The position numbers and the translations under genes were made by a program. DNA of 64,000 nucleotides from Lama glama. Taxonomy: Eukaryota. Location: positions 1,116,001 through 1,180,000 of the forward strand of contig CM052823.1 in assembly GCA_028534125.1 (NCBI GenBank), written 5' to 3'. The stretch's first letter is position 1, and every line of letters begins with the position of its first letter. The notes under the pieces are model-generated. The model saw nothing but the letters and a program-made list of their open reading frames with translations, made no database searches and was not told the DNA's origin. This document shows, piece after piece, positions 12,128 through 63,272 of the stretch.

Positions 12128-12580
12128 CAGGCATGACGGCGGCAGGAAGCTGTTGACCCGCGAGACGCTCCACATGCCGTCCAGGCACTGCTGAGCCTGG
12201 ATGGTGACCGTGCTCAGGGCCCCGCCCAAGCCAGCAGGCGCCACCGACACCTGGACACTGGGCCCGGACGGCCAGGCCAGCCCCTTTCTCCGGTCTGGTC
12301 CCACTCGGCCCGGCTGCCTCCCCACCAGGCCCGCCGGCGCTGGTACCTCCCTCAGGCTGGTGGCAGCGCCAGGGCTGGGGGGCGCGAGGCCGGAGCCTCC
12401 ATGAGGGGCGTCCAGCTCTTCGCGGCTGGCAGGGGCCTGCAGCAGCCGCAGGGCCTCCCGCGTGAGCTGGTTCAGGTGTGTGGCACAGACGTCACAGCGG
12501 CGCTCAGCCTCCGGGTGACACGCAGGCAGAGCCCCAGGTGCCGGCAACTTGTCGAGAAGCAGAGCAGAGAGACACGGATC
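12128..12580 (-). CDS. KIF26A: KIF26A coding exon 3 ([13 protein letters not shown]...[11 protein letters not shown])
   Basis: Lies inside ORF 12050..13159(-). Acceptor cccag|GAT, donor CTG|GTGAGT; 453 nt, phase 0/0. Contains the KIF26-type segment [25 protein letters not shown]. Confidence 0.95.
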
Positions 12581-25193: not shown

Positions 25194-25439
25194 CCGGAGG
25201 GATGTCCCGGGCCCGCTGACCAGCTTCCACGCTTGTCGCTTGAGCTCGGCGAGCTTCGTGTGGCAGTGGCGGCACCAGCCGCCTCCACCGGCCGAATGGC
25301 CCTGCTCTGCGCCTGCCCCGGCGCCCTCGGGCGCAGGGCGGCTGCCGCAGGGGTCCTGTTCTGGCCCGGCGGTCAGCCTCTTGCGGGGTGACCCCTCCAG
25401 CAGCCGCAGCGGCTCGCGGGCCGGGCCGCCCTCGGCTAC
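25194..25439 (-). CDS. KIF26A: KIF26A coding exon 2 ([10 protein letters not shown]...[28 protein letters not shown])
   Basis: Acceptor gcag|GTA, donor CGG|GTAAGT; 246 nt, phase 0/0. Translation matches recalled KIF26A. Confidence 0.95.
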
Positions 25440-25777
25440 CTGCGGGGGGTGGGGCGGAAAGGGACCGTGAGCCTGAGCCACTGGGCGGCGCCACCCAGGG
25501 ACCCAGCACCGGTGCCTCCAGACCTCAGAGCGACCCAGCACCAGAGTGACGCAATCGACAAAGTTAAGAGCGCTGGGCGCGAACCAGCCGCCCACCTTCT
25601 TCTTCCATCCCAGGTCTCGATTAGGTCCCCTACCCCAGCAGGAGGCTCGGCGCCACCCGCGCTCCGCTACAGGACGGGCCCCCAGGGCTCTGTGCATCCT
25701 CTGTGTCCCGGGCTCTGTCCCGGGCGGCCCGGCGGCTCCCAGCCGCCCGCCTCCCTCTCGGGCCCGGCCGCGCGTAC

Positions 25778-25819
25778 CGCGGGTTGCGCCGCGCACAGGG
25801 TAGCGCCACGGCTGCCCAT
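25778..25819 (-). CDS. KIF26A: KIF26A canonical first coding exon ([14 protein letters not shown])
   Basis: Strong Kozak gccATGG at 25819; 42 nt, then donor GCG|GTACGC. Resembles the recalled human start MVGRGVPLCAAQPA. Confidence 0.88.
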
Positions 25820-26295
25820 GGCCAGGACGTGGGAAGGACTTGGCGGTCGCTTCGGGGCCACTCGGGCTCTCCGGGGCGCCGTGGCTACGTGATCCTGTCC
25901 GGGGACGCCCCCATGACCCGGCCGGCCACTCCGAAGTTCGCGGCCCGGACGAGCGGCAGAGACCGCGCGGCGGTGGCGGCGGCGGCGGCGGCGGTCGGTC
26001 GGTCGCGCTGGGAGGCGAGGGCGGGGCCGGGGCGGGGCCGGGGACTCCGGGGGCGGGGCGGGGGCGGGGCTCCGGAGGGCTGTCGGGACCCGCCCAAGCC
26101 CTCGCTCAGCAGTGCTTGGGGGAGGGTGTCCTGCTTTTCCCCGTGGCTCCACCCACTCCGAGGCCCCCAACCTGTTAGGCGAGTCCCAGCGCAAGAGAGG
26201 AGCGCTGGGGGCCACGGTGAGAGAACCGGTACACGCGCGCGCATGCGCTTTCCTGCTCCGCTCCTGGGACTCTGGGACCTCCCGGGACATACCAA

Positions 26296-26410
26296 CCCAC
26301 TCCTCACTTTACAGGAGAGAAAACTAAGACCGCAGAGTGGAAGGTCTTTCCCAAGGTCACACAACAAAGTGGAAGGAAGAAGGGGCTGAACCCCAGCCCC
26401 TAGACTCCCA
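26296..26410 (-). mobile_element. MIR SINE fragment inside the KIF26A CpG island
   Basis: CACTTTACAGGAGAGAAAACTAAGAC...TTTCCCAAGGTCACACAAC core. Confidence 0.7.
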
Positions 26411-28001
26411 GTCGCTTTTTCCTGCAAATCCAGCGCACTCTGCGTGTCGCTGGCCACCTTTTGGGTCTGTCCCGCGTGGGTGAGTGTCGCCATGGTCTGC
26501 GCCTCGGAACGTGCGGTGCCTGCTCCAGTGTTTCTGTGTCTAAGCGTGTCTGCAAACGGCACGCGTGTCTCTGTAGCCGCGCGTGTGCATGATGTTGGGT
26601 GTGCGCGCTGTGCGCGGGGGAAGCGGAAGGAGGTGGCCCTGAGGGTGTGCGGGGGACCTGTTGTCAGCCAACCTGGCAGATGGGAACTTAGCTTCGGAAT
26701 TAATTGCCTGTTTGTCTCAGGCTGGGAGGTCGCCTCCCTTCTCCGGCGACCAGTTGCTCCCGCTCCAGTCCAACTCTTAAGAGTTGCCGTTATCCAAGGC
26801 GGCAGGCGGCTCCCGGTCCCAGCTCTGGGTCAGCCTGAAACCCGAGGTTGGGCTCAGCGGGCGCGGCCGCCCGGCTTCTCGTGACGCGAGCGCCCCCTTC
26901 TGGCTGTCGCTCACCCGCGGCCGCGAGGCTCTGGAGAGACCCGGCACCGCCGTCCGGGGCGAACAGGCGCGCCCGAGAGACTTAGGAGGAGCGAAGCCAG
27001 AGCAGAGGCGGCTGGCGGGCGCAGTCCAGGCGGAGACCCGGGCCAGCGGATCCTCGGCCGCAGTGAGACCCTCACCCAGATTCGAGCAGCTCCCCGCCGC
27101 TCCTGAGCCCCTCAAAGCGATCCCTTCTTTATGTTTTGCCCACCCTCCCTTTCACTAGGAAGGTCCTCTCCACACACGCAGCACCTCTCCAAAAAGAGAG
27201 GACTGGGGGTGATCCTCCCGTCTTGGCTTTCCGAGTCGTTTATGGCATGCAGCGTGCGTCGGGGTAGCAAAAAGTGGGCAGAGGCTCCCCCCACTCTCAC
27301 TCCACGATCCCACATCTTCCAGACCCTTTCCACCCGGCCCGGGGGCCGGAAGCTCTTCGCCTTTCCTACCTCACCTCAGCTTCCTAAAGGAAAACGGGCG
27401 TCAGCCCCCATCTGGATCTCAGTACCGCGGGACACCACAGCCCCCGCCCTTCAACTGCTCTGGGACTCACCCACACAATTTCCCACTTGCACCCCTAGAA
27501 ACACATTGGCGCCAGGAGCCGGGGTCCTATGCCCCGGGCCGGCCACACCCGCAACTTCGTTGGTCCGCACCGCTGAGACACTACAGGAAGCACACGCTCA
27601 CACCCGACACCCCAATTCCTGGAGGCGGCCGGGACACAGCCCTGCAGAACCTAGAGGTGCAGGCGGGACTCGAACACCTCAGGACTCAGGATCAGCCAGG
27701 AGGCCCCAGACCCCCTGCCTCGCCCACCCCGGGAAGACGCGCGGTGGGACTCAGAGTCCCGGCGCTGCACTGTCCGCCCTAGCTGACGGTCCCCCGCTCA
27801 GGATGCAGCATTGAGGGGATAGCGAGATGGGGCAGCACTAACGGGGAAGTGCGGCAGCGAGTCCCCGACCCGGCCTGCGGGACGCGGCTCCGGACCTGCT
27901 GCCTCTTTTCCCGGCGCCGCACCCAGAGACGCAGGAGCCGCGCGGCAAAGTCGTGGGACAGCGCCTCTGTCGCCAGCCGGGTCTCGCCGCCCGGCCCTCA
28001 C

Positions 28002-28139
28002 CTTGGCTCGCCGCCGCAGGAGGTGGCTAGTGAAGCCCAGGATGATCTCCGAGTCCAAGCAGAGCGCCCCCATCTCCAGCAGGCTGGGCGCCTTGCGGGG
28101 CGCGCCGCGGGGCGGCTCGGGCGGCCCGGGCAGAGCCAT
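28002..28139 (-). CDS. KIF26A: Putative alternative first coding exon of KIF26A (MALPGPPEPPRGAPRKAPSLLEMGALCLDSEIILGFTSHLLRRRAK)
   Basis: ATG at 28139, 46 codons, ending at a consensus donor AAG|GTGAGG in phase 0, compatible with exon 2. The peptide is protein-like despite lying in a CpG island. Confidence 0.65.
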
Positions 28140-31069
28140 CGAGGAGCGGAGCGCGGGGAGCGGCGCCGAGCTCCTCCCGCCGCCGTCGCCGCCACCTCCC
28201 CGCCCGCGCGCTCACTGGCCGCGCGCCCGACGCCGCCGCGCCCCGCACGGCGCAGAGCCGCCCGCCAGGCCCCCAGTCCGCCGCGGCCCGCGCCCGCCGC
28301 CCCTGCGCTCGCTCTGCGCCGCGCGCCCCCGCGCTCCGGCCCCGCCCGCCCGCGCCGACAGCGCCCCCTCTGCCCGCGTGGCGAGCCAGACTCCCGGACA
28401 CGCGGACCTGAGGAGGAGGGGCGGGGGGCGAGGACCCCACCCGCCGTGGGGCGGAGGATGGGGGCCAGGACCTGACCTAGGTCCTCACCCGTCTGCCTCG
28501 CGCGCCTCCTACCGGGTGCTCCCTCCCGGAAGCACAGAGAGGGGGCTGCGACGCTGAGCGAGGTTCCGGGAAACCCCTGCAGATAGGGGACCTATCGCAG
28601 CATCTCCCCATCCAATCCGTCCTGGGGACTCTTGCGCCTTGGGGTCCCAGTCCCTGGAGAAGTATAGGCAGCCCAGTGACCTTGCGCTGCCCGCTCTGCT
28701 CATGCTCAGAGAGCCCCTGTCTGTAGCGCCTCCTTGGAAGCACCCCATCCCACACCCAGGCCTCGGCCTATCAACTCCCAGGGCCCACCCACCGGGACCC
28801 CAGAGCGCCTCCACTCAGGACCCGGATTCCACCGCCACCTGCAACCTTCTCTGCCTCTGACCCAGACCCCTCTAGCCGCTCCTGGAACTCCCTGCGGGCA
28901 GGAGGATCCCTGCTGTTCTCCAGACACGACCAAATTTCAGTGTCTGTGGCGCGGCGTTTGAGGAGGAGGGAGTGGGCTCTATCTGTATACAAACTCAGGC
29001 CTGGGCACCGCGCTCCTACTCGGCGCAGCCCCAGTCTTGCAGCCTAGCGGGCACCCTTTGGAGGCGCAGGCCCCGAGGTTGCACGACTGCCTGGGAAGGG
29101 TGGAGCCCAGAGACAGGATAGCCTAAATAGCCTAGGCCCAGGGGGAGGTCTTTGGTAATTAGGGGGGTGTATTAGGGACCACTGTGGGGGTGAGGGAGGA
29201 CCTTGAACAGCACCTGGAAAGTAAGCAAGCAAAGAAGGAAGACTGAAGCAGCGAGGACCTGGAGGTCACAGCGCTGGGCCCCTTCAGAGGTGCAGGCGCG
29301 CAGTTGCTATAACATCACAGCTGGGCTGGAGTCTAGGGCAGGACCAGCTCAGCAGGCCCCTCTGCCCCCTGGGAAGGACCATGGAATCTCCCTACGCCCC
29401 ACTCTTACGTGGGGTGGGTGACCCTCCTGCTCCCCAGGGTTCCTCCCCGGCACTCCAAGTGGCAGCTGGAAGACATTGTCTCCTCCTGCTTGCACCCAAC
29501 GGGCTCATCATAAACACCTTACCTGCAGGCCACAGGGCTGCCCATTCCCACCGCTCTGCCCCACCCAGAACTTCCGATCAAGAGGGACACCCTGGGAGGA
29601 GCTTCCTGCTTCCCTGTCCCCACATTCACCGCTGGCCTGGGTCAGCGATAAGGGCAAGCCATAAGGCGGGGTCAGAGTGCCCCCGCTGCACCCCCCAGAC
29701 CCCTTCTCTGGGCTCCAGGAAGCCACATTGGGAACGCCCGGCTCTCCTCCCTCCCCCATGGGCAGGCACTGGGGTGACTGTCCTGTCCCCCACCTCCTCC
29801 AAGACTCTGAGCCTGGGCAGGGGGGGCTCCCTCCAGTGGAGGAGGTCGCCGCCATCTCAGTGGATTGATTAAAGTCATCGTGCTTTTTTTTAACATTTAA
29901 TTTACCAAGCATGCCACGGCCAGTCAGAGCTGTCCCTGGGGAAATCTAGGCCAAGGGAGCAAAACAGAAAAACCCCGGCAATTGAGCAGGGCTGCGACAG
30001 GATTAATTGCTGGACTCAGCTTCCAATCAGACCCCATGTGGCCATATTTCAGGAAGGTAGGAGGACCCCCGGTGGAGTGGTCAGATTCCTGCATGAGGCA
30101 TGGGGAGCCCTGAGCCCCCATAACACCTCTCACCCTGACCCACTGGGGACATGGGAACATCCCCCCCCAGCTCCATATGCAGCCCACCTACAGCCAGGAA
30201 GGGGCCAAATCCTGTCAGCCAGCAATTTGAGACCTGAGAAGGCACCCTGACGTGCTCCCATGGTGCACTTTGGGGGAAATGAATACCTTGCAGCAGTCTC
30301 TGTGGTGATGGGAAACTGGAGCAGCAGGGAAATGAACAGCAAACCCTAACACCCGATCCTTGGCAACCGTGGACACAGGTGAAAAGCCAGGGCTCCTGGG
30401 AAGATACCCAGACACAGTGTGCAGCACGGTCAGGTTTGCATTTCTAAAGAACATTTATGCCCGTAAAGCCTGGATCTTTCCTGGGAGAGATGCAACAGAC
30501 AGGTAAGAGTTGTTATTTCTGGGGAGAGGAGAGAGTGGGTCCACTCTCTACCCCTCCATGTGGTTTTCACTTTTGCAGGGTTTTTAACCCCGAGTTTTCA
30601 CATTTCATAAAGACATCAGGAAGGGTTGGAATGCCTAAGTTGCCAGGGGTGAAATGTTCAAACTAGGACCACACTCAGCATGGAGCAGACCCTCCCTCCC
30701 CATCATGGGTGGAATGGGGGAGAGAAAGAAACATTACCCCTTCACCTTAAGGGGACTTGGGACCCTCCCAACTTCCCCAAGTGAGGTCAGCTCACCAAGC
30801 TTCTCGCTCAGCACCCCTCCAGGAGTCAGGGCTCATGTCTGGGGTGGAAGAAGGATGCTTTAGGAGGGAAGCCAGTGATGCCAGCCCAGCCATGTCCACG
30901 AGGAAAGCCCACCTCGGCTGAGGGCAGGGTCTCCTGGCCAGGCCACACCCCTCCTCCTCCTTACTTCTGAGAGCAGGTTTCAAGTGGAGAAAATATCGTA
31001 GTTAAGACAGTTCTCCCTCCTAGAGGGGCTGAGTGCTGGGGGAGGGCAGGTCCTATCTGTTGGGTTAGC

Positions 31070-38010: not shown

Positions 38011-39620
38011 CTCAGTCTGTGCCAGAAATGGGGGTGGGGATGTGGCCGAGGACGGTCCTCCAACACTTCAGCCCCTAAGCTCTCCAACCTTGCCCCTGAC
38101 CAATGACTAGAGCCTGACCAGGCTGGGCATGGTAGCAGCCAACCAGGGGCCCAGTACGGGGGGAGGCTGGAAGCAGGCTGGAGCTGCCTGAAACTGGGGC
38201 CCTGGGGACCAAGTCCTTTCCCCAGCCTGGCTCCTCGAGGCAGTAGTAGCTCAAAGCAGAAAGGAGGGTGTGTGGCCCAGGGGTCTGGTTCAAGGAGGTG
38301 GGAGGTTTGCTGGATCCTGGAGGCATCCCTTCATCAGCTAAGAGAAGGCTGGTTGCAGGGACCGGGGGCTCGCTGGGAGACCACAGTGCCAAAGGCAAGG
38401 CTGAGGCTGGAAGCCAGGTCCAGGGTGAGGACCTGGTCATCCCTCCCATAACCACCCTCATTTCTGTCCCTCTGGGGTGGGAAGGAAGGGTGAGGTCTGG
38501 AAGAGAAAGGACAGCTCCTCCAGGACACGGTAATGCTTTAGAACATACGTTTATTTTCATCAATCTGTAGTACATATGTTCGCTTCTTACAAAATGATGC
38601 TAAGCTGCAGACTAGGGAACACCCTGTGATTCCTCACCTGAGCCCCAGCAGGGGAGCCCCTCTCACTGAGCTGTGGGAGGGAGGGTGGGGCAGATATCAC
38701 AGGGAGGACACGCTGCACGATGAAATCACCACCCAGAGGCACTGGGTGCAGGGGCAGCATAGCCAAGACCCTCCGGGGCCCTCGCAGCACCACGGGCCTG
38801 GCCTGGCACTGTGTCCCACCGAGAGATGGCTGTAGTGGAGTCTGCTGGGACACCCCACCACACACCAGCACATTCACAGGCAGGCGACTGGCCCAAGGCC
38901 ACTCAGCCGGTCCATGCACTGATGGACCTCAAACCCAGGTGGGTCTGACCCACCAGCTCCCCCAAACGCTGAGCCAAGGAGGAAGGGACCTTTCCTCCCC
39001 AGAGGGTGTGGCCAAGCCAGCGGGCCAGGCGGGCTCCGGGACAGGTTAGTCTCATCCCGCAGGCAGAAGTGACCTCGCCCCTGGCGGGAGGTGGGAGTGG
39101 AATGACACTTGGCTGAGCCCCTCCCAGAGCCAGCTCCTCCCAGGGATTACGCCAGGCTCTCGCCGCTCCCACAAGACCTCTGGGGCCGGGGCGCAAGATC
39201 CACTTCAGCAGGGAGCCGTAGGCGGCAGGAGTGACAGCCTGCGGGCCTGTCCCCCTCCCTGGGGCGTGGTCTCCCAGTTTCCTCCCCACCCTCAGTTTCT
39301 GTCCCTCGGGGTCCTCCATTCATTCCGCGCTCGCCCTGCCCGGGCCCTCTGAAGTGAAGGCTCAGACGGCACGACTCCCAGCTCTCTCCCAGCGAGCCCG
39401 CGACGGACTACGGCTCTGGGGGACGCGGTGGCCGCATCCCCAGCTCCCAGGAAGCCGGGAAACAGGAGCGCTCCTTCACCCCACGGGGCCCACCCCTAGG
39501 TCCCGGCTGGGAATTCGGTGCAGTTTCGAGAAGGGTGGGGACCCTCAAGGCCCAAGAGGGCGGTGGCGGCGTCTCCAGGCCGGCAACGCGCCAGGAGCGT
39601 GGGCCTGGCGCGCCCGAACC

Positions 39621-39686
39621 CCAGCCGTTCCCAGCCGTCGCCAGCAGTCCCCAGCGGTCCCCAGCCGTTCCCAGCGGTTCCCAGCG
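39621..39686. repeat. 10-bp minisatellite CCAGC(C/G/A)GT(T/C)C, about 6.6 copies
   Basis: Units start at 39621, 39631, 39641, 39651, 39661, 39671 and 39681 (partial). Confidence 0.9.
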
Positions 39687-39879
39687 CTCGGCGCCACCAC
39701 GCCCGGCCGCTTCCGGCTGTGCCCGGCCCCGAGGTCTGCCGGCGCGGTGCGCAGGTCTCAGGCCGGCCTGGGGCGCGCGGAGCCGGGTCCGCGAGCTCCT
39801 TCCCGACGGCTCCGGTGCACGTCTGCCCCCGCCCCTGCTCCCGGGCCGCGCGGGGGCCGCCCCGTCGTGTCGCCGCCGT

Positions 39880-39970
39880 CGCCGGGCCCGCCGGGTCTAG
39901 TGGTCCTAAACATTTCACAATTGCGCTACAGAACTGTTGAACTGTTAAGAACCACTGCACCCAGCGCGCC
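39880..39970 (-). ncRNA. MIR203A: pre-miR-203 (miR-203a) hairpin; mature 3p at 39897-39918, 5p at 39932-39956
   Basis: Minus strand reads GTGAAATGTTTAGGACCACTAG (miR-203-3p) and AGTGGTTCTTAACAGTTCAACAGTT (5p arm). The position between ASPG and KIF26A is the known synteny. Confidence 0.98.
39885..39968 (+). ncRNA. MIR203B: Antisense hairpin equivalent to miR-203b (5p 39898-39919, 3p 39937-39959)
   Basis: Plus strand gives TAGTGGTCCTAAACATTTCACA and TTGAACTGTTAAGAACCACTGCA, matching the antisense miR-203b annotated in human. Expression in this species cannot be seen from sequence. Confidence 0.55.
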
Positions 39971-41319
39971 AGTCCGGGCCCGCCGCGCTGTGGGGAGAAG
40001 AGCCCTTCCGCCCCGCGCCCTGCTGGCCGTCCGCCCCGGCGCCCCCGGCGCCCCGACGCCCCGACGCCGCGACGCCGGGCGCAGGGGCAGCGCGGCCGCC
40101 GAGCCCCCGCGAGCCCAGCCGTCCAGGCGGCGCGTCCCCTGCGCCCGCGGCCCCGCGCGGCCCGGCGGCTGCGTCCGAACGGCGGCGGCCAGCGCCGCGG
40201 CGCCTTTTAAGCGGGGCGGCCGCCCTCCCCCGCCGCCAGAATGTGCCCGCGCTGCGCCGGCCCGACCGGTTTTTCCAGGCGGGGCGGCTCCCGGGCCGGC
40301 AGGTCGCGCGGCGGGTCGTCCGCGGCCCGGGTACCTGCTCGTCGCGCCCACGCAGGGGTGGCCCTGACTCACCGGCCTCGCGGCCCCGCCCGGCGCCCCC
40401 GCCGCCAGCGCCCAGCTTGGGCGCACCTGGAGTCGCCGGGGTCCTCGCCCCAGGCCCGGGGGCCACACCCACCCCGGCTCGCCCCGGACCCGGGGACGGG
40501 GGGACCCAGGCTCCCGGCGGTGAGGTGCGGGTGACGCCGGCCACGTCGGTGCCCAGGTGATAACCGGAGCCGGCGGGAGCCGGGGCCCGGGTTGGGTCAG
40601 CGGTGAGGGTGCGGGCCGGCTGGACACGCCCATCCCTCTCCCTCTCACTTCAAAGGAACTTCATGGGAGGGGGAAGGAGGGGGACAAAGAGAAAGTGAAA
40701 CTAGAGGGAGGGCGAGAACGGGCCGGGCAGGTTTCTGGTCCTCAGACCCTGCCTTTTCCCAGCGGGTAAGGAGGGCGGCTGGGACCCCTGTCAGAGCCCA
40801 CACGGGGAGTCCCATCCTACCCCTTACTCCTCGTACGGGGCGGGGGCACAGCTCTGCTCTGCGCCACACGGGGGCAAGAGCCCCCAACACTCCCCACCAA
40901 CACACACACACATATGCACACACACACAGCACACGGCTCTGGCCTGCCCACTTCAGTCACCTGGAGATGTTGGGGCCCGACCAGCCAGCCTCAGGGCACT
41001 CTGCCTTACCGCAGAGCTGCCTGTGGGGGGCTAATGGGGGGGGGGCGCAGCTTTAGGAAGGAGAAAATTTGGAGGGAGGTGGGCCCTAAAATCCTCAGCA
41101 CACATCTTGAGCCACCAGTGCTGCTGCATGACGATGGGCGGCCGGCAGTGGTCACCATCATTCAGCTGAGCCCCGGGCAGTTACATGCCCGCACGACCAG
41201 CCTGAGACCAGTGTCCTTTGGGCTCAGGAGCCCCGGGTTAGTCCCAGGCCAGGGATGCAGCCATCAAGTTGTGATGGGCCCTCGAGAGGTTTCCACCTAT
41301 GTTAGGGGCAGTTTACCTA

Positions 41320-60793: not shown

Positions 60794-62488
60794 CTGCAGG
60801 AGATGGCAGGCTCAGGCAGGTCCAGCCTGCCCCACTGCTGGCCTCCTCCTGGGCAGACACTGGTCCCCTCCACCACCAAGAAGAGGAAGGAAGGGCCCCA
60901 CACCCAGCTGGAGGGACTCGAGGAGGTGCCAGAGGGCCCCTGGTCACTGGTGGCCGGTAAGGGCCTCTGGAAACGGAGCCCCTGCCTGGGGTCCCCGTCC
61001 CCATGCTCTCTCTGACCCCTCGTGTGAGCCTGAGGTCTCCCCACGACACCCCTCACCTACGGAAGAACTCAGGTCGGGGTCTCTGGATGGTCTTAACCCG
61101 AGGATGGGAAGGTCTCCCCCAGGATGCCCACTCTGGGCTCCCGAGCACACTGGTCAGCTGGAGGACTGTGCTGGGACTCAGCTCCGTGCTCCAGGAGGGC
61201 CCCTTGCAGAGTGACTGCTGCCTCCAGGACAGCAGGGGCTGCGGGGAGAGCAAGCCCACCAGCCTCTCTCTCGGTCCAGTGGGAGGGCCAGGCGTGGAAA
61301 CAGCACCGGCACGAGGTGCAGCCAGCGCTGGGAGGCGGCCAGGATGCTGGCAGGCAAACACAAGGAAGGGTCCCTCCAAGCACGGCCAGAAGGCCTCCCA
61401 GCCAGCTCTGCATAGGCATCCTCCGGCCACCGCCTCCTAGAGGGCAGCTGGCTTGGGCCGTCATTTCGGGGGCACAGTTCTGGGAGCCAAGGGGACCTGA
61501 GGAGACCAATTCTTATGGTCCATTGAAAGGCCAAGCCAGGCAGGCTGGAACTGCAGGGTAGCGGAGCCAAGCGGCGGGCTGGGGCGCCCTCTGCTGGCCA
61601 CACATGGCACAGGAGCAGTCAGGGCCGCCCAGGCTGCAGGGACCCTTTGTGAGTCTGCAGGTGGCGGGACCCTGCCCCCAGGACCCTTTGGGATCAGGCC
61701 CCACCCAGGGGATGCTGCTGGCCACAAGCCAGGGAGACTGCCCCAGAGGATGGCTGGACATGCCCACTGGCACCCAGTGGCCCCACTCTGAGACATAAGG
61801 GCCAGGCCCCAGGCCACAGGTTGTCCTGGGTGATCACAGTGAGAGGGGATGATGCCCAGGAAGCTGTTCTCCCCCAGGCAGAAGGAGACAAGCGTGTGAC
61901 TGGGGCCAGCCCCCAGCTGCCAGGAAGGGAGGCTTGTGTGACCAGCCTCTGGGGCACAGGGTTTCTTAAGGGAGGAAGGTGGGAAGTGGGCCTGGAGGGG
62001 GTGGGAGAGCCCCCACCTCTGGGAGGCAGTCGAGGTAACTCGAGCACAGGGCCAGGCTCGTGCAGGTTGGGGTGCAGCGGGGATGAGAGAGAAAAGCTGA
62101 TGGTAAGGGGGTGGCTTTGGCCTCAGGTAAGGCAGCCACATTGTAAACCACGAGACCTTCCCGGGCTTCTGTGCCCCAAATCTACCAAGGCTGCAGCTTT
62201 AGGGTGGGCGTGGGGTGGACAGAGCAGGGGTGGGCCAGGCACAGAGCTCGTCCGTCTGCAGGGACGCACTGCACACTCAGCCTGGGATACTCACTGGGAC
62301 AAACTAACTGTTTAAACACATCAAGACAGTCGTCCGGGCCCTTCCCTCGCCGGAAAAGGGGACATGGCCCTCGCTGCCCTGCCTCCACTCCACTGGCACG
62401 GGAGAAAGGGCCTCGGGAGCCTTGCTGCTGAGGTGAGACCCGCCCACCTCCTAGCCACCCCCATGCTGCGCCCACACCCCCCAGCTAC

Positions 62489-62600
62489 CTCGATGGTCTG
62501 GGCAATCTGAACCCACTCAGCGATGGTCATGTCACTGGAGTCGAAGAGGGGCTGGCACTCCAGCACTGTGTAGACGACCCTCTGGCCGGGGCTGGCAGGT
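62489..62600 (-). CDS. ASPG: ASPG exon 3 ([37 protein letters not shown])
   Basis: DSSDM substrate-binding motif; cgcag|A ... GAG|GTAGCT, 112 nt. Confidence 0.95.
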
Positions 62601-63272
62601 CTGCGGGAGGCAGAACGGCAGGCCCCCAGTCTGTGGCCTCCTCCTCTGGCAGCTCTGCCCAGCCCGGACCCCGCACCTGCACCCTGGGATGTGTGCAAGG
62701 CCTCTGCACACCCACCAGGCATCCCAACCTCCCCTCCACCCGAGTCCCCAGGAACAAGGCCCGTGGTCCCCAGGAGGAGCCAAGGACAGGCCAGGACGGA
62801 CTGCTCCAGGGCAGGGTCCCCTCCCACAACCAGCCAAGAAGGGGGCTGGGCCATGGCAGGGAGCCAGGATGGCCCTGGGAGGACAACTGTGGGCAGGAGG
62901 GAGGTTGGTGACCAGCCTGCTAGCAGCCTGGGCCAGGAACTGGGAAACAGAAGGACCTTCACATGGGGGCTGGGGAGCCTGGGGCCACCCCTGCCTCTCT
63001 GCATGGGCTTAGGTCCCTGCATGGCCAGGGCGGAGGCCTGCAGCCCCGCAAGGTGGTAGGAGTCTGAGGCTTCTTTGAAAGGGGGCAGCTCTAAAGCCAT
63101 GAAAATGTGAGGATGCCGGGGAAAGCCTCCTGCAAATGGCTCGCATGGACGCACTGAGAAACCGCAGCCTGTTCCACGGACCTGGCAGGTGCCACCCAGT
63201 CTGGGGATGGCCCTCCCCCGACAACCGCTGGCTGTCAACTCCACCCGGGGCCCCAGGGGAGCCCCTACTCAC

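Follow-up and report, generated by a model that had tools for sequence, protein, structure and literature searches.

KIF26A exon 1a in Lama glama: a probable ancestral first coding exon encoding a conserved N-terminal motif

KIF26A is a non-motile kinesin, and two reports describe brain malformation and intestinal pseudo-obstruction as the result of its loss (PMC10585591, PMC11608842). PMC7832431 maps one KIF26A promoter relative to one transcription start site, and no isoforms are mentioned in the passages searched of a 2026 bioRxiv mouse allele paper or of PMC11608842. In the passages searched, KIF26A papers that name a cDNA cite NM_015656, and none refers to an alternative start. Judged by Pfam family name, KIF26A and its paralogue KIF26B have two domains in common, the motor and the tri-helical PF23081.

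Most mammalian database entries of KIF26A start with a 14-residue leader, MG[GS]RGAPLCAAQPA. Predicted eutherian isoforms that start with MALPGPPEPP... have a leader of 46 residues, of which 41-46 are identical to the one encoded in the window (here and throughout, the whole stretch of 64,000 nucleotides analysed, which contains 0 runs of N), and exon 2 follows directly after K46; examples are Mustela lutreola X1 (P0123), Saccopteryx leptura X1 (P0122), Panthera onca X3 (P0125), Meriones unguiculatus X2 (P0129) and Sorex araneus X2 (P0023). The 14-residue leader has no sequence similarity to the 46-residue one; both are spliced in one phase to a common exon 2 acceptor, but the donor of the 14-residue leader is weaker and this leader is devoid of the conserved motif described below. 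In non-mammals (Emys P0189, Struthio P0201, Xenopus tropicalis P0213, Protopterus P0202, Cetorhinus P0203) the N-terminus of KIF26A resembles that of the window in its motif, in its exon 2 boundary (...RR[RK]xK/V...) and in the invariant GFTSHLL core, whereas the first 18 residues diverge with small indels and position 34 is occupied by Phe, not Leu. Several of the non-mammalian species have the leader start in their only listed model. Set against the eutherian predicted isoforms, the exon of the window shows no substantive difference and represents this exon in one more species.

Two first coding exons at one locus

In the window, KIF26A lies on the minus strand, with the following elements:

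28140 to 28500, minus strand: presumed 5'UTR and putative distal CpG-island promoter, from composition and a scan for stop codons and ATGs
28002 to 28139, minus strand: coding part of exon 1a, 46 codons from the ATG at 28139, matching KIF26A N-termini
28000 to 28001, minus strand: splice donor GT of exon 1a (AAG/GTGAGG), phase 0; gene models switch to exon 2 after K46
25778 to 25819, minus strand: exon 1b coding sequence for the "canonical" mammalian leader of 14 residues, with its ATG at 25819-25817 and donor GCG/GTACGC
25194 to 25439, minus strand: exon 2, 82 codons (246 nt), phase 0-0, with an acceptor common to exons 1a and 1b
12128 to 12580, minus strand: exon 3, 151 codons, phase 0-0

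The preliminary description of this DNA had reported an ATG-initiated open reading frame of 46 codons, roughly 2.2 kb upstream of the canonical ATG, that ends at a consensus donor in the phase of the exon 2 acceptor, and our analysis bears this out. The frame of exon 1a opens at 28139-28137, encodes the peptide MALPGPPEPPRGAPRKAPSLLEMGALCLDSEIILGFTSHLLRRRAK and has its last base at 28002, approximately 2.2 kb from the canonical ATG; its donor, AAG/GTGAGG, is stronger than the GCG/GTACGC of exon 1b. Both ATG 28139 and ATG 25819 run in phase 0 into the acceptor of exon 2 (ccccgcag/GTAGCC, first base 25439), and the frame is also kept when exon 1a is joined to exon 3 at 12580. Exons 2 and 3, as well as the motor and large exons, are located downstream of exon 1a on the same minus strand. 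The exons of the window were compared individually, each on its own; exon 2 shows 96% identity to its pig counterpart. By codon position the GC content of exon 1a is 0.72/0.57/0.93, a periodicity like that of coding sequence.

A GC-rich, promoter-like core had been proposed upstream of the frame, and such a core is present: GC content is 0.87 and the CpG observed/expected ratio 1.24 at 28201-28400. An in-frame TGA lies at 28214-28212, 75 nt upstream of ATG 28139, and a scan for ATGs found none in the 464 nt upstream of 28139, that is, none before 28603. The two first exons are located within one CpG-rich block of approximately 3.3 kb (25200-28500) and not in two cleanly separate islands; the CpG observed/expected ratio is mostly 0.6-1.2 across this block, with peaks at 25800-26000 and 28200-28400.

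We also looked up a 259-nt stretch, 28002-28260, in public sequencing runs by means of 22 sampled words. Five RNA-labelled runs from two studies (X1, X3, X4, X5 and X6) contain 0.27-0.55 of these words and four runs of unknown kind contain 0.86-1.00 of them; because the matches are assembled contigs, they indicate presence only and carry no information on splicing or strand.

Two other features of the window were observed outside KIF26A. A mir-203 precursor (Rfam RF00696) at 39886-39969 matches on both strands, best on the minus strand (98.7 bits), and is embedded in a GC-rich block with long spurious open reading frames (~39200-40650), upstream of KIF26A and on the same strand. An open reading frame of 307 residues at 62321-63244, minus strand, contains a stretch of 30 residues that may be asparaginase/lysophospholipase-like (ASPG).

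The 46-residue leader in KIF26A proteins

Proteins were searched with three queries, the first of which was the large exon downstream in KIF26A (L004:4038-7067, minus strand, an open frame of 1009 aa). Of the 120 proteins listed for this query, two carry the leader at residues 1-46 according to BLASTP. In Pteropus vampyrus (P0015) it is identical at 45 of 46 positions and is fused directly to exon 3 sequence (DPCLSALL...), and in Sorex araneus isoform X2 (P0023) it is identical at 43 of 46 positions and is joined to exon 2 sequence. Residues 1-46 of P0023, used as the second query, returned 12 clusters with the leader at residues 1-46 (E 5e-19 to 2e-14), from Sorex, Pteropus, Mustela erminea, M. 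lutreola, Saccopteryx, Nyctereutes, Panthera onca, Smutsia, Ovis ammon, Octodon, Meriones and Vulpes. A hedgehog cluster (P0131), obtained with residues 1-128 of Mustela lutreola, is the thirteenth from eutherians, and together the 13 span six orders (Carnivora, Chiroptera, Pholidota, Artiodactyla, Rodentia and Eulipotyphla). The leaders of P0121-P0124, which come from carnivore or bat lineages, are identical to that of the window at all 46 positions, and those of rodents, sheep, pangolin and shrew at 41-45 of 46; among eutherians an indel occurs only in hedgehog.

The surmise of the preliminary description that the leader may exist in predicted isoforms thus proved correct: it is present in 13 eutherian clusters, joined to exon 2 after K46 in all except Pteropus, where exon 3 follows, and Vulpes, where the model exits early. 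The latter model (Vulpes vulpes P0130) quits the leader four residues before its end and continues into a stretch similar to what lies upstream of exon 1b, probably an artefact of the model. Mammalian predicted isoforms may rest partly on protein homology instead of RNA and are not independent proof of use. Exon 1a is already present in public gene models and, as a discovery, is ordinary in kind.

The third query, residues 1-128 of Mustela lutreola P0123, extended the comparison beyond eutherians. Sorted by N-terminus, the 120 proteins listed for it fall into these groups:

Long leader: 30 clusters of the 120 listed, 13 eutherian and 17 non-mammalian
14-residue type: 72 clusters of the 120 listed, 71 eutherian and one from echidna (P0216)
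Other or partial N-terminus: 18 clusters of the 120 listed, among them read-through or ab initio starts and short alternative leaders (snakes, lizard, sharks)

The non-mammalian leader clusters comprise one turtle, one lizard, two birds, one lungfish, two sharks, seven frogs and three salamanders, and the boundary between leader and exon 2 keeps its position throughout the leader-bearing models, with P0015 and P0130 as the two exceptions. Because the same leader starts KIF26A in turtle, lizard, birds, frogs, salamanders, lungfish and sharks, exon 1a appears to be the ancestral first coding exon. The preliminary description had presented it as an alternative exon; a 46-residue leader does replace the 14-residue one, but the exon is not a side variant, since it encodes what appears to be the ancestral vertebrate N-terminus.

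Among the 120 proteins listed, the 14-residue leader is confined to eutherians and echidna. Short alternative leaders of other kinds (MPPVLG..., MPGSKS...) occur in snakes, a lizard and sharks. Considering these varied short leaders together with that of eutherians and echidna, alternative first exons of KIF26A seem to have arisen more than once.

Primate, afrotherian, xenarthran, lagomorph and perissodactyl representatives among the matches listed do not carry the long leader, which is not evidence of its absence in these groups because clustering at 90% identity can hide isoforms. The matches listed include no marsupial or teleost entry with the N-terminal region. A leader profile run against 130 proteins revealed no diverged leader in the N-terminally short entries of birds, reptiles and fish, which are entries without the N-terminal region.

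A second copy of the leader was not found in the genome of the window with either the leader peptide or a 10-sequence profile, including the vicinity of KIF26B on contig C25, where no leader-like exon is detectable at the paralogue's locus. The best other genomic match (C13:6459341-6459442, minus strand; E 1.43 with the peptide and 0.145 with the profile) contains two stop codons and is probably due to chance; it is not near KIF26B.

A conserved motif at residues 19-46

The conserved motif occupies the second portion of the leader:

28002 to 28085, minus strand: conserved 28-residue motif SLLEMGALCLDSEIILGFTSHLLRRRAK, residues 19-46, defined by alignment and predicted to form a helix-turn-helix

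We aligned the leader of the window with those of 29 full-length leader-bearing proteins (30 rows, Vulpes P0130 being left out). The residues M1, L21, G24, L28, D29, G35-F-T-S-H-L-L41 and R43 are invariant in the 30 sequences, so that the peptide of the window carries every invariant column; R15 and K16 are nearly invariant. The motif has the form LLE-x-GALCLDS-[ED]-II-x-GFTSHLLRR, spanning 27-28 residues, and its replacements are conservative (E/D, I/V, L/F, R/K). The peptide of the window also agrees with the looser pattern LLE-x-G-x-x-C-LD-...-GFTSHLL-[RK]-R expected of the KIF26A N-terminal end. Conservation was measured at the protein level, and for non-mammals against a mustelid reference it amounts to:

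Residues 19-46 (motif): 18-25 of 28 identical, no gaps
Residues 1-18: 4-9 of 18 identical, small indels
Exon 2: 34-52 of 82 identical, some gaps
Motor domain: 206-217 of 297 identical, few gaps

By these identity ranges the 28-residue motif is roughly on a par with the motor domain in its conservation and far surpasses its neighbours. Conservation of the peptide across vertebrates had been named in the preliminary description as a point to check, and it is found in all 17 non-mammalian clusters.

AlphaFold2, run with the 30-row alignment, gave a mean pLDDT of 80.4, with values of at least 90 for 24 of the 46 residues. It predicts helices at residues 20-28 and 30-45 and no regular structure for residues 1-19; the first 18-19 residues, which are variable and Pro-rich, are probably disordered. 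The idea that the predicted helices are amphipathic and bind membranes was dropped because their hydrophobic moments are low (0.25 and 0.18).

No Pfam family matches residues 1-46 of the three leader-bearing proteins that were searched; the KIF26A/B tri-helical domain PF23081 matches residues 99-174, 103-188 and 99-179 in them, leaving the leader outside, and the Pfam match to the motor domain begins near residue 456. A leader profile built from ten sequences has no match among solved structures (the best hit, a ribosomal protein, has an E value of 2.1). Searches of the open full-text literature for KIF26A isoforms or promoters and for motif strings, which covered main texts, found no description of the motif. 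Exon 1a is therefore known from public models, while its motif is undescribed in Pfam and in the open literature searched.

Use of exon 1a and the role of its motif

Taken together, we consider it highly probable that the reading frame at 28139-28002 is KIF26A exon 1a, the gene's ancestral first coding exon in jawed vertebrates, which is spliced in phase 0 to exon 2, and that the proximal exon 1b gives rise to an isoform devoid of the motif. Transcription of exon 1a would most likely begin in the putative distal CpG-island promoter that adjoins it, and translation at ATG 28139 (Met1), which has no other ATG ahead of it for more than 460 nt. In Lama glama the transcript would then most likely be spliced at AAG/GTGAGG to exon 2 (25439), and a skip to exon 3 at 12580 would also keep the frame. 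The resulting leader would consist of a variable stretch of 18-19 residues followed by a helix-turn-helix motif. Exon 1b, seen only in mammals, would yield the motif-less isoform that dominates mammalian database entries.

Could translation start mainly at an internal ATG, which the preliminary description had pointed out as lying in a strong context and as a source of a 24-residue leader?

28074 to 28076, minus strand: internal ATG (Met22) in the strong context CTGGAGATGG; present in 12 of 13 eutherian clusters, not ancestral

The context is indeed strong, although a leader starting at Met22 has 25 residues and not 24. It would begin with MGALC and might be lipid-modified. At -3 there is a purine for Met22 and T for Met1, and Met22 is in addition followed by G at +4, which makes some leaky scanning plausible, and Met22 is followed by Gly, giving the Met-Gly that is the first requirement of N-myristoylation. 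However, position 22 is Ile or Leu in all 17 non-mammalian clusters and Val in hedgehog (P0131), so the internal ATG is a change that belongs to eutherians and does not represent a conserved start, the motif works in these species without a start at position 22, and the shorter leader as an isoform of its own finds no support in the comparison. The residues upstream of Met22 stay in frame as well, including the nearly invariant R15 and K16. Myristoylation prefers a small or hydroxyl residue at position 6, and the sixth residue counted from Met22 is Leu. The candidate of an N-myristoylated Met-Gly start was itself rejected: Gly24 is invariant, but a Met in the preceding position is not conserved, being replaced by Ile, Leu or Val outside most eutherians. 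Translation mainly from ATG 28076 therefore appears very improbable to us.

If Met1 is the start, exon 1a might still be a relic, an ancestral start unused in mammals that persists in gene models only because annotation copies it by homology. The numbers of database entries point in that direction, with 72 of the 120 listed clusters showing the 14-residue start and 13 eutherian clusters the long leader, as does the fact that the cDNA in KIF26A papers, where one is named, is NM_015656 and that no other start is mentioned in the passages searched. Against this, the leader is identical at 46 of 46 positions in three carnivore or bat lineages and at 41-45 in rodents, sheep, pangolin and shrew, with hedgehog providing the only indel, and an exon out of use would not have been preserved across such a span. 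ATG, donor and phase are all intact in the window, and the RNA-labelled runs contain part of 28002-28260. We hence regard a relic as very improbable. An accidental frame, open by chance in a non-coding 5' exon or in ordinary CpG-island DNA and reaching a GT by coincidence, would be understandable in GC-rich sequence, where stop codons are few, and many overlapping frames of similar length occur in the same island. The peptide is nevertheless conserved from sharks to mammals, always at the N-terminus of KIF26A, with a GFTSHLL core that is invariant in 30 of 30 aligned sequences; the codon-position GC periodicity is coding-like and the AlphaFold2 prediction is confident. On the basis of these sequence comparisons, a chance frame can be considered already refuted.

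What the motif of exon 1a does is a matter for a more tentative proposal. It may be an undescribed ancient module, with a docking or autoregulatory role, that is older than the divergence of cartilaginous from bony vertebrates. Mammals would have gained a further promoter with its own first exon, which lets them make a version without the motif as well; we hold this as a possibility somewhat short of probable. Our best guess, which is speculative, is that a partner, or the tri-helical domain next to it, could dock on the module. Since there are two first exons and only exon 1a has the motif, promoter choice would decide whether KIF26A carries the ancient N-terminal module.

The combination of the best-conserved N-terminal element with a putative switch by promoter choice offers a testable lead for an isoform-specific function and for variants upstream of the reference start. 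If the motif is indeed such a module, the NM_015656 cDNA, which we take to be an isoform of the 14-residue type, would miss one of the most conserved parts of KIF26A, and the choice of isoform would have consequences for signalling by KIF26A in neurons and in the gut.
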